A stretch of 63,839 bases of DNA, counting the filler, from Polymyxa betae A26-41 (Eukaryota; Protista; Endomyxa: Phytomyxea), in the NCBI GenBank assembly GCA_003693705.1. It is 4 parts of 4 records of this genome, joined end to end, with 100 filler letters (N's around TTAATTAATTAA, not from the genome) between each part and the next. Parts side by side here need not be neighbours in the genome. Positions count along the whole stretch, not along the records: positions 59,622 to 63,839 come from RBZT01000569.1; 3 more parts are not named here. The stretch is one strand, 5' to 3'. Positions 59,622 through 63,839 of this stretch are shown one piece after another. A model generated the notes under the pieces. The model saw nothing but the letters and a program-made list of their open reading frames with translations, did not search any database and had not been told where the DNA came from. Position numbers and translations under genes: made by a program. The stretch's first letter is position 1. The number at the start of each line of letters is the position of its first letter.

Positions 59622-60176
59622 ATTGGCATCATCTTGAAGATGCCGTTCGAATTCATTACGACAATGCTCGTTCCAGATTAGAAACTCTCGATCCGGACGT
59701 CCACTGCAAGTTCCTTGTTATGAACATACCAGAATTAATAACAAGCAAGTCGACGATAATTTTCGTCTTAGAACGCCATAAGTACGATCTGGGGTCGTTC
59801 AGGATGTACAAAATAACGAAAAGCCAACATCAACGCCATAATACTCGAAGTCCCTGACGGTTGGTTGCAGTTTCCAGCTTCCAGTTTCCTTCACACATCT
59901 CGTGCAGGTGGCGAGAGGCTGCTGATGTTGTGATGCACGACGTCACACTCACACCAACAGCTACTCTTGATTTTAGTGAGATCGCCGAATATTGAGCTCT
60001 GATCGTTAATGTTATACCGGAAATAGAGTTAAGCTTTCAACCTCGACGTGTCCATAGTGAGAGAGACTAAAAATATGTCTAAACAAATACGTCAGTCTTT
60101 CAAAACCCAACTACTTAAGAAACGAATCTCCAAACTTCTGCCCGAATGGCCAAAAAAGAACAGTTTACAGATCGAC

Positions 60177-61259
60177 ATGCTATCGCTTACCTCAATATTG
60201 GTCGTAATGTTAATATCAGGAATGAAATTTCCTTATAACGCTCTGTTGGATTCGTCCGGCCGCGACAACCCATTGGCTCAGAAATATCGCTCCATCTATG
60301 CTGAACAGATGTCGCTGCCCATATCAGAGCGCCGATATCTTGTATTCGATCTGGAAAGCCAAGGACTCGGCTGGGGGAACCGCCTGGAAGGGACTGCAGG
60401 CGCCTTCTTCGTCGCCCTCAACACATCGCGAATCTTTGTGATCCGAAACCATCCCTTATGGGAGACTGTCTTTGATACCGATCCGTCTGCTTCGAATCGC
60501 TGGCAGTTCCACAAAGACGATATCGAGCGCGCATCGCAGCAGTCCCAGCTCCGTCTCGATAACGATAGATTCGGGACGTTCATCCATACGGAGCCTTCCA
60601 GGTGGGAATCGCAGATTCTTCGCAACGCTTCGGTCGTGTTCGCGACGACGGCGCTGACCAGACCCATGGTCTATTCCACCGAGCTATTCCATGATGAGAA
60701 GGGGTTCTACACACAAATGGGACTGGTCCTCTCGTACCTGACTGCCTATCCATCCGACAAATTGCAGGACGGGCTTCAGCGTGCTCAGCAGCGTTTCAAT
60801 ATGTCAAGACGGGCCGAGACATTGGTCGCCGTTCAGATGCGGACCATGTTCGACGATGGTGATAACTACCAGAGGGCCATGCAGGCCCCGAAGCAGGCCG
60901 CCTTCTGGGCCTGCGTCACGACCGCCTTATCGGGCGTTGAGCCTGACAGCACTGAGATTATCTTCACCACCGATGAGCCGGCTCTGAACCAGCTCGCCAT
61001 CGACATCATGGGCCAGTACGGGCGCGTCCTGGTCAGCAACGGACCGGTCGTCCATACGGCCGATGCGAAGAACGACGAGTTTCCAGACCCGATTGCGGAC
61101 TGGTGGCTGATGGGCCAGGCCGACCGCCTGCTCTGTACCGGGACGAGTTTCTGTCATACAGCTGTCTGGAGATCCCGAAGTCATGCAGTGCCACATTTCT
61201 GGATCTTATTCAACCTGTACTCGACCTGGAAACCAGTTTGTCGCCTGATCGATGCATGA
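60177..61259 (+). CDS. Fucosyltransferase-like protein (GT37/GT23-NodZ clan), apparently intronless
   Basis: N-terminal hydrophobic anchor; GLGWGNRL, VAVQMRT, IIFTTDE and DWWLMGQADRLLCTGTSF correspond to alpha-1,2/1,6-FucT motifs. Confidence 0.75.
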   Translation: MLSLTSILVVMLISGMKFPYNALLDSSGRDNPLAQKYRSIYAEQMSLPISERRYLVFDLESQGLGWGNRLEGTAGAFFVALNTSRIFVIRNHPLWETVFDTDPSASNRWQFHKDDIERASQQSQLRLDNDRFGTFIHTEPSRWESQILRNASVVFATTALTRPMVYSTELFHDEKGFYTQMGLVLSYLTAYPSDKLQDGLQRAQQRFNMSRRAETLVAVQMRTMFDDGDNYQRAMQAPKQAAFWACVTTALSGVEPDSTEIIFTTDEPALNQLAIDIMGQYGRVLVSNGPVVHTADAKNDEFPDPIADWWLMGQADRLLCTGTSFCHTAVWRSRSHAVPHFWILFNLYSTWKPVCRLIDA

Positions 61260-62265
61260 CATCGTAATGTCTATCAGAACAATGACGTATGTTGATAAAT
61301 ACCAATCGATACTGAAAGCCAAGAAGTAACAGGCTAATCCACACCACCAGAGTAGAAAGAAGAGGATCTGGGATTGCACTCAGTTTTCAACTTGTTATCA
61401 TTCATCTCGCCAGACACAATCAGTTCAGCTGGCTCAACGCTGCAGCTTTATCCGCTTAATTCCATATCAGCATGCAGTATCAAAATTTGACCTGATCGAA
61501 GTCGTTTAATTGAGCTGTCTGACCGACTTGTGCTTCGGTGATGTAATGGGGGGAGGAGGGTTCGAATTCGAAGCCTCGAACCATATGATAATGTGGACAG
61601 TTAAATGAAAGATCAGTACAGATTAGTAAGGTTTCCATAACAAAACAATGAATTATTACAGTACACTTAGCTTGTGGATGATACCGACCTGCGTACTAGA
61701 TGGCATTTTCTCTAGGTCCACCCATCGTCTTTCGAAATCGGAATTTCATTGAAGCGGCCGTCTGTGGGTCCACTACAGCATCACAATCGACCCTTCATTT
61801 CACTTCAACTTCTATCCTCGTAGAGGAAAGAGAAGGGATTTTTGTGCCCATGTTAATATACTTCGCAACACTCCTCTTGTCCCATTACGATTACTGTGAA
61901 TTTAGTCCACCTAAACAATATCGTAAAGCGTCGCGAGCTCGGCATTTCTCCCTCCATGCGAAGGTGTCCGATGTAAAACAGCTGACATTGCCTACTTCTA
62001 CCCTGACAGGTCAAGTCGTGCTCGGCGATGATGATTCCAGCGATATCCACACGGACACCAATTGACAAGGCCTTCCACTCTGCAATTACGTTCCCTCGCT
62101 GTTGCTCTCACTAAAATATGGAACCACACAAACCCCTTTGACTTAATGCATACTCGCGGTCGATGATTCTGATGAAGTAACGGCAGATCACAGGTATTTT
62201 ATTCCTAACTATGTTTGCTTTATGTGATCGAAACGGAGCAGCTAAGCGCGAGAATCAGAAACTTG

Positions 62266-63653
62266 TTATTGTTCGGAAGGAAGTGATCGTGCGATAACAG
62301 CATTTGCATAGTCCATATTGCCGCATGTAAGAACGTCTGAATCATTCATGTCCAGCCTAGAAACATTGTTGATTTGTGACCATAGGATGGTTTCTATGTT
62401 GATAGCCCAGTTTTGACAGTTGCGTGCTTCAGATTGTGGCTTATTGTGTGTATTAAAGCCAACTTGGAACGTTAGGGCATCTGGGTATTGCTCTTTCATT
62501 TCGTCGATCCTTCGCCGAAGAATATTGTCAAATGAATCCCCGCGTATATTAAAGAACCATGATCCGGGGGAAAATACGTCTCGTGAAATAATTGCCACTG
62601 GGAATTGTCGGATCGCGTTGGAGAAGAACCAGGGTCCCGTTCGCTCATAAAATTTTGCTTTTTGTTCAAAATAAAGATCTGCATACAGCAACTGCAAGTT
62701 TCGCAGAATATGTTCCATGGCAGGATGACACTTGGAAACACCGAAAACTCCATTCATGAAGAGGTTGATGCCGTCGTCAGATCGGACTTCGTCGTTATGA
62801 CCAACAGCGAACATCCCAAAAGGTTTCGCCAAATCGAGGAGGTGGTCGAAAGATTTCTGGAGCCAAATGGAGTCGGCATCAATATAGATTCCTCCTTCTC
62901 TCCAAAGGACTTCATATCTCAAAATATCAGCTTTGGCTTCAACGAAGGGTTCCCGGTCATATTGCCTTCCAAGGACCATTGGGCCATACTTCTTCTCATA
63001 CAACTCTCTATTCCAGAGTTTATAGGTCCATGATGGATTCTTGTCGATAAAGTCAATTCGGAAAGAATCCATCCACTTGCAATATGCGTTTTCAAATGAG
63101 TTACCAACCCAGACTTGGTGAATAATCTTGGGGATCGAAGGATAGTTCTTGATACTCATCCATCGCCTCATAATATCGTACTCATAAACAATACTATAGG
63201 ACAGAGGAGGACTCTTGGCATGCATATCGTCTGGATTAGGACCAGCCCAACAGTCTTTGACAATAACAGCTTCTTCAACCACAGGAGCAACTGTGGGCGG
63301 AGCCGTAGTCGACTGAACGAAACGATATTCTAAGGTCCCTGATATATTCTTTGTGACGTTGACCGTTGGAGACATTGCCGCAGCTAGGATGTCGACAATT
63401 CTTTCTGCTGCATGCCCGTCTCCATAAACGCTGCTGTCCGATATTGACGTTGTGTTCATGGATGATATGACCGAATCGATGCAGGTGATGATAGCACCTT
63501 CATTAGAGCCAACTAGGAAGGCGATCCCGCTTCTGACGCCTTCAGGCCGTTCCGTGTTATCACGCAAGACGATTGTGGGCTTTGCGAGACTAACGGCCTC
63601 CTCCTGGATACCTCCTGAGTCCGTGATGACAAAGTCACATGCAGAGAGCAGAA
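62266..63653 (-). CDS. 5'-truncated fusion: non-hydrolysing UDP-GlcNAc 2-epimerase (WecB-like) C-terminus + Thr/Pro linker + GT32 (DXD) glycosyltransferase
   Basis: One open frame: FVITDSGGIQEEAVSLAKPTIVLRDNTERPEGV...YGDGHAAERIVDIL, then IPKIIHQVWVG...KADILRYEVLWREGGIYIDAD...TGPWFF. Confidence 0.85.
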
Positions 63654-63839
63654 GTTAGTCTCGCAAAGCCCACAATCGTCTTGCGTGATAACACGGAACG
63701 GCCTGAAGGCGTCAGAAGCGGGATCGCCTTCCTAGTTGGCTCTAATGAAGGTGCTATCATCACCTGCATCGATTCGGTTATATCATCCATGAACACAACG
63801 TCAATATCGGACAGCAGCGTTTATGGAGACGGGCATGCA
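63409..63839. repeat. Perfect inverted duplication (63409-63594 / 63654-63839, runs to window end), 59-nt spacer
   Basis: The last 186 nt are the exact reverse complement of 63409-63594. Confidence 0.95.

Follow-up and report, generated by a model that had tools for sequence, protein, structure and literature searches.

The window analysed here is a stretch of 63,839 nucleotides from Polymyxa betae A26-41, and the piece that we examined is its last part, positions 59622-63839 (RBZT01000569.1). The gene of interest lies on the minus strand, where a single open frame of 462 codons runs from 63654 to 62266 and ends with a TAA stop codon at 62268-62266. This frame encodes, in order, the C-terminal quarter of a wecB-class epimerase (63385-63654, residues 1-90 of the visible frame), a linker rich in Ser, Thr, Pro and Val with two N-x-S/T sequons (63259-63384, residues 91-132), and a GT32-family GT-A glycosyltransferase domain (62269-63258, residues 133-462). 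The epimerase part carries the motifs DSGGIQEE (residues 12-19, 63598-63621), found with the same letters in the relatives P0011, P0219 and P0243, RDNTERPE (residues 31-38, with TERPE, recognised from the sequence and its relatives, at 63541-63555) and YGDGHAAERI (residues 77-86). The linker contains QSTTAPPTVAP (residues 113-123) and the transferase domain a DXD motif, D259-A-D261 (62872-62880). The original prediction had named these motifs and placed them in one frame; all are present in frame as described, and only its start coordinate, 63653, has to move to the codon boundary at 63654. Its central observation, an intron-free, in-frame junction between a wecB-class epimerase and a GT32 domain with a DXD motif, is borne out in four independent assemblies.

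Downstream of the stop codon lies a probable 3' untranslated region (62173-62265, minus strand), with a canonical AATAAA at 62203-62198, 63 nt past the stop. Two contigs end near this 3' side of the gene: one from run X4 at 62173, which is 25 nt beyond the signal, and one from run X8 at 62206.

Convergent with the fusion gene is an ORF of 403 residues (60048-61259, plus strand), which is far GC-richer (GC3 0.65); its product has a GxGN-type motif and, close to the N-terminus, a hydrophobic segment. Its only resemblance, to eukaryotic clusters of FUT8/O-FucT-like type, is one of language-model features (0.96), and Pfam, NCBIfam and a word search gave no homologue. Rfam and tRNA scans of the piece returned nothing.

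The contig end and the domain junction

The end of the window (63655-63839) is a fold-back misassembly and not genome sequence at this place, as 63654-63839 repeats 63409-63594 in reverse complement over 186 nt (99% complementary, with one mismatch at 63469). We compared the piece with contigs of four runs from four studies (X1, X3, X4 and X8). No contig of these runs follows the turn at 63654; all four diverge from the window at this position, and do so with identical alternative letters. Hence the turn arose in the assembly of the window, and it is misassembly, not the genome, that cuts the epimerase short. Genomic DNA continues upstream of 63654 into more epimerase sequence. The X4 contig (2597 nt) covers 62173-63654 and extends 1115 nt past the window end, and the X8 contig covers 62206-63654 plus 221 nt further. 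The 30 visible letters of the loose end beyond 63654, read on the minus strand and in frame, encode TDPLSYTDMT directly before LLLSACDFVITDSGG, which fits the DPL.Y.D segment ahead of the same motif in P0011, P0219 and P0243. Approximately 270 epimerase residues, including the N-terminal catalytic half and any anchor, lie beyond the window. The original prediction had been made subject to the epimerase being more than a catalytically incomplete fragment; such a fragment is what the misassembled window contains, but apparently not what the underlying DNA encodes.

Is the junction between the two domains itself real? The fold-back artefact does sit at the same contig end, and this is what could be said for an assembly chimera or a bacterial contaminant. 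Against this, in X3, X4 and X8, which come from separate studies, one contig each runs through the linker (63259-63384), so that sequence data span the domain junction, as the original prediction had asked, and a chimera becomes very unlikely. The GT32 half, in addition, has eukaryote-type relatives. On the spanning contigs and these relatives together we have rejected both a chimera and a bacterial contaminant, and regard them as extremely improbable. A single X3 contig spans 60188-63654, and coverage of the junction region in X1 is interrupted only at a SNP (63302). Two coding polymorphisms were seen: A118V, in the linker, and the conservative I16V within DSGGIQEE, which comes from run X3.

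Some further variation was observed across the piece. In run X3, 9 nt are inserted after 62019, between the genes, and other small strain differences occur at 61854, 63302 and 63609. At the left end, in the region 59622-60217, the contig graphs of all runs branch at 59697/59699 and at 60217, and in X1 the depth falls from about 372 on the left of 60217 to 211 on its right, with 59622-59699 higher still. The pattern points to either a second allele or a repeated copy, diverging at 60217.

The epimerase and GT32 halves

The epimerase half is matched by Pfam Epimerase_2 over residues 2-90 (E 5.1e-27, 95.1 bits against a gathering threshold of 30.6), at profile positions 256-346 of 347 only. Among the NCBIfam profiles, only wecB (TIGR00236) matches (E 6e-25, positions 272-363 of 366), with a score of 88 bits from the 92 positions present, to be read against an equivalog cut-off of 210 that applies to the whole domain. 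The NeuC (NeuC_NnaA) and ROK kinase profiles of Pfam and NCBIfam have no match in the visible frame. The assignment of the TERPE class to WecB-type enzymes and not to GNE/NeuC, made originally from the motif, agrees with the profile result. The best solved relatives are the bacterial non-hydrolysing epimerases 5dld, 3beo and 1f6d (E 7e-19 to 2e-14). The C-terminal DSGG(I/V)QEE and TERPE motifs are both present in the visible part, and DSGGIQEE is a conserved epimerase signature with a role in UDP binding. In a tree of the 97-column epimerase C-terminus, the query falls in no supported set and is unplaced. In an AU test, a single clade of the window's epimerase and the protist fusions described below was not rejected (p-AU 0.73), and the constrained tree scored higher. 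Either a common origin with these fusions or a separate transfer from bacteria, of the kind that the original prediction considered, may therefore lie behind the window's epimerase.

The second half is matched by Pfam Gly_transf_sug (PF04488) over residues 190-272 (E 2.5e-9, 38.1 bits against a cut-off of 23), and similarity to stand-alone GT32 relatives begins at residue 133. Its closest relatives form the P0001 cluster (54-56% identity, E 1e-114); they stand alone, are 344-369 residues long and carry an anchor at the N-terminus. The DXD residues D259-A-D261 are invariant across nine sequences (alignment A1) and nearly invariant in a second alignment (A2). A structure model of the GT32 half, built with 27 relatives, has a pLDDT of 85 and a pTM of 0.85, and a Foldseek search with it found the retaining GT-A enzymes YeGT, PaTox and SetA and the fungal Och1 (E 8e-9 to 2e-7, TM 0.35-0.4). 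Several cysteines of this half are kept in the anchored relatives, which fits a protein of the secretory pathway. The visible protein itself has no hydrophobic anchor, with a maximum 19-residue hydropathy of 1.34 compared with 1.6-3.0 in 8 of 11 close relatives.

These observations bear on whether the epimerase is translated at all. Conceivably, translation from an internal start (M94, for example) or splicing yields the GT32 part alone, and the epimerase is a decaying remnant or an untranslated leader. The close GT32 relatives are all stand-alone, a methionine directly follows the epimerase end, and the upstream part of the gene lies outside the window. However, the epimerase motifs are intact, the sole polymorphism among them is conservative (I16V), the upstream frame goes on with conserved residues, and a product started at M94 would be without the anchor that its relatives carry. 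We consider a GT32-only product very unlikely, and take the frame to encode a fusion protein.

Distribution, genomic setting and protist relatives

A HMMER search that read all 1.84 billion representative proteins found no other protein with both the epimerase and the GT32 domain: long GT32-containing matches carry GT25, GT2, LicD, PIG-L or a second GT32, but never Epimerase_2. The window's fusion protein is itself absent from both protein collections searched, an exact 24-mer of the epimerase loop has no match in JGI metagenome contigs, and a protein-guided scan of the JGI metagenomes found only two loci, both with a stand-alone gene like that of P0001. Within the limits of these data, the epimerase-GT32 fusion is confined to the source organism and its near kin. 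Since it was found nowhere else, conservation cannot vouch for its function. We found no description in the literature of this fusion or of the protist epimerase/GT-A fusion family introduced below, and the Mastigamoeba genome paper makes no mention of such a fusion. The original statement, that no description of this fusion in such an organism was known, thus stands, in the literature as among the 1.84 billion representatives.

Members of the two families were also seen near each other in other genomes. In IMG/VR contigs, an Epimerase_2 gene lies about 1 kb downstream of a GT32-like gene, with both on one strand, in loci L011, L013, L014, L018, L020, L021 and L026, and the same layout occurs in L030, L042, L045, L046, L050 and L075. 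An operon in L018 (3998-7970) encodes a short GT32-like protein (204 aa), a GT2, an Epimerase_2 protein (333 aa), an unknown ORF and a hexapeptide acyltransferase; L018 also has a UvsW-type helicase and so looks T4-like, and L050 has the same ORF layout. Such T4-like phage operons show that the GT32-like and epimerase families occur together elsewhere, which is less than a proven pairing. A different arrangement is seen in L088 (P0264; GCA_037975565.1, JBBCBH010003500.1), where an epimerase C-terminus is followed by an Anp1/GT2-like part; this fusion stands in a row of GT2 and GT1 genes, and its epimerase is called as two overlapping pieces.

The original prediction allowed for the contig being bacterial or viral contamination. 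We find that the setting of the fusion gene is eukaryotic, on the basis of GT..AG joints, the AATAAA signal and relatives that lie beside eukaryote-only genes. The joints are two in number and come from X4, in which 60079-60190 (112 nt) and 60684-60737 (54 nt) are skipped. Both have strong splice sites on the minus strand (gag|GTAAGC...TTTAG| and cag|GTACGA...ATAG|). They lie on the strand opposite to the 403-residue ORF, and joining both does not create a long minus-strand ORF in the ORF listing; they represent either an antisense transcript or the read-through or leader RNA of a minus-strand gene. X8 has a depth of 12.7 over the fusion gene and essentially zero over the adjoining 1.4 kb, and given this gap X4 and X8 behave like RNA-derived assemblies. 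Hence the fusion gene is apparently transcribed, a conclusion based on the coverage gaps, joints and contig ends of runs none of which is recorded as RNA. As for the neighbours of relatives, P0123, the closest GT32 relative (P0001-type), adjoins Yippee/Mis18 and ThiF-rhodanese genes in a compact contig. Runs from eight studies, with four or five organism labels between them, also contain the sequence.

Could the piece nevertheless belong to a giant virus, or to a giant-virus insertion in a eukaryotic genome, and not carry an ordinary host gene? Giant viruses and phages have many GT32-like genes, 459 of which were confirmed in IMG/VR, and GC content is uneven across the piece (GC3 0.65 in gene 1, the 403-residue ORF, and 0.45-0.54 in the fusion). 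A relative of the GT32 half with 44% identity, P0005, adjoins Peptidase_S74 and deoxynucleoside kinase (dNK) genes, and because of these virus-like neighbours a viral or virus-derived origin keeps a small probability. Set against it are the spliceosomal-type joints and AATAAA signal, the eukaryotic contexts around the best relatives, and the occurrence of the sequence under several organism labels and in many studies. Identity to the GT32 relatives from IMG/VR is 30-35% across the domain and does not exceed about 43% in short segments, compared with 54-56% for P0001. We therefore hold to an ordinary eukaryotic gene, and judge a viral piece improbable. In the P0005 locus itself (L089, an ENA metagenome contig), the Peptidase_S74 neighbour is a protein of 1634 residues and the other neighbour is the deoxynucleoside kinase; this context looks viral, so that this GT32 subfamily would be common to small eukaryotes and viruses.

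Among the epimerase matches, P0011 ranks first (56-58% identity); it is a fragment cut short by its contig and has 326 residues more. An analogue of full length comes from Mastigamoeba balamuthi (EP00727_P000133, here P0219; 869 aa). At its N-terminus stands a hydrophobic anchor, followed by a full wecB-class domain, a linker of poly-Q and a C-terminal domain in which DDD and EDFW motifs are invariant. It scores 374 bits against wecB, and another member, P0288, scores 356 bits (cut-off 210). A search with the P0219 epimerase domain, accepting only proteins of 478-1520 residues at E<=1e-10, gave 1247 matches from ENA, JGI, Logan, TARA, MMETSP and EukProt, most of them unnamed environmental sequences. 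Among the 119 best-scoring of these 1247 (P0219 and P0280-P0398 label the family members; alignment A3), a GT-A-like C-terminal domain is common to 110, a hydrophobic segment precedes the epimerase in 84 of the 108 that are full-length, and GT32 occurs in none. The C-terminal domain of the family (approximately 280 residues) has no sequence match in Pfam or PDB, and bears no similarity to the window's GT32 part; its model (pLDDT 85) is GT-A-like, with weak fold matches to PmHS2, KfiA, EXTL2 and GalNAc-transferases. The members that we sampled come from EukProt Mastigamoeba, MMETSP or TARA, or stand in eukaryotic contexts: one lies beside genes for coatomer beta, XPB and an M16 peptidase, and another beside a nucleotide-sugar transporter gene (L004, L005).

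From these sequences, wecB-type epimerases appear to be widespread in protists, where they are typically anchored and fused to a transferase-like domain. This corrects the original premise that non-hydrolysing epimerases are not standard eukaryotic enzymes, as more than 1000 long proteins have a full wecB-class domain and the sampled ones are eukaryotic. It also means that "bacterial-type" epimerases in eukaryotic assemblies need not indicate contamination. Both domains of the window's protein are of known kinds, and it is their combination that is new, within a broader theme of epimerase fusions.

Proposed function and known systems

We propose that a eukaryotic gene, of which the piece contains the 3' two thirds, joins an epimerase, through a Ser/Thr/Pro-rich linker, to a GT32 domain with an intact DXD motif, and that its product is a bifunctional enzyme of glycan building; we think this reading probable, with moderate confidence. 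By analogy with the 84 anchored proteins among the 108 full-length protist members, the complete fusion protein would be a type II membrane protein with an N-terminal anchor, and such an anchor would place both domains in the lumen of the ER or Golgi. There, the epimerase could convert imported UDP-GlcNAc to UDP-ManNAc on the spot, and the tethered GT32 could transfer ManNAc, or a sugar that depends on its supply, to a glycoprotein, glycolipid or wall polymer. The product would presumably be alpha-linked, as the GT32 enzymes characterised so far are retaining. In this arrangement, the epimerase would replace the anchor and stem of the stand-alone GT32 relatives. The lumenal model draws on those relatives being anchored and having conserved cysteines while the visible part of the fusion is without an anchor, and also on the layout of P0219, the design shared by 110 of the 119 best-scoring proteins, and the one member beside a nucleotide-sugar transporter gene.

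An alternative is that the fusion is real but its domains are not a donor-maker and a donor-user. The GT32 would then move mannose, galactose, glucose or GlcNAc, and the epimerase would make UDP-ManNAc for another enzyme or balance the lumenal pools of UDP-GlcNAc and UDP-ManNAc. The donors of the fold relatives YeGT, SetA and Och1 are UDP-Glc, UDP-GlcNAc or GDP-Man, a second transferase-like gene is found at a distance of 1 kb, and the T4-like phage operons pair the epimerase with several transferases, among which GT32 is not exclusive. We know of no GT32 enzyme that uses UDP-ManNAc. On the other hand, consecutive steps are the usual meaning of a covalent fusion, and the parallel protist family also couples the epimerase to a transferase-like domain. 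We regard this alternative as unlikely but of appreciable weight, and continue with the paired donor-making and donor-using enzyme.

More tentatively, there may be a hitherto undescribed secretory route to ManNAc-containing glycans in many protists, consisting of anchored wecB-class epimerases with interchangeable GT-A transferases, of which the window's gene would be a domain-swapped member; we see this as possible but would not yet call it likely. If true, the epimerase, with GT32 as its partner here and a GT-A domain of no known class in over 1000 other proteins, is a module portable between transferases. In eukaryotes, ManNAc is mainly a cytosolic precursor of sialic acid and not a building block for Golgi transferases. 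A lumenal epimerase-transferase fusion would thus point to uncharted surface or wall glycans of protists, with donor supply that needs no dedicated transporter, and through the GT32 version the idea of lumenal supply can be tested on a second, independent fusion partner.

How does the protein compare with known systems? Compared with the bacterial WecB/RffE and MnaA enzymes (1f6d, 3beo, 5dld), the C-terminal quarter aligns end to end, with DSGGIQEE, TERPE and YGDG intact, and its identity to many bacterial enzymes is 49-57%. The bacterial enzymes, however, are free-standing cytosolic proteins of approximately 370 residues, whereas here a glycosyltransferase is attached to the C-terminus, in a eukaryote. 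GNE, too, is a eukaryotic protein in which an Epimerase_2 domain is fused to another domain, but it is hydrolysing, cytosolic and joined to a ROK kinase, while the fragment described here matches wecB only and has a transferase attached. With GT32 enzymes (Och1, Sur1/Csh1 and A4GALT-type), the second half shares the Pfam family, the DXD motif and, in its GT-A model, a fold match to Och1 (9n3s) and to toxin-type GT-A enzymes. It belongs with P0001-P0005 and P0136-P0141, an uncharacterised subfamily, and differs in that its own anchor and stem are absent, with the epimerase in their place.

In plants, Golgi-lumenal interconverting enzymes make a sugar donor inside the lumen, so that no dedicated transporter is needed. 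These enzymes (type II UDP-GlcA 4-epimerases and UDP-Xyl synthases) follow the same logic as that proposed here, but have unrelated folds and no transferase fusion, and we infer the topology of the window's protein. A further comparison is with the protist anchor-epimerase-GT-A family represented by P0219. The order of epimerase, linker and transferase-like domain with DXD or DDD is the same, and the epimerase C-termini are 54-58% identical to that of the window, while the C-terminal domain is of a family other than GT32. This family gives a natural frame for the window's gene, which has the same design with GT32 as its partner.
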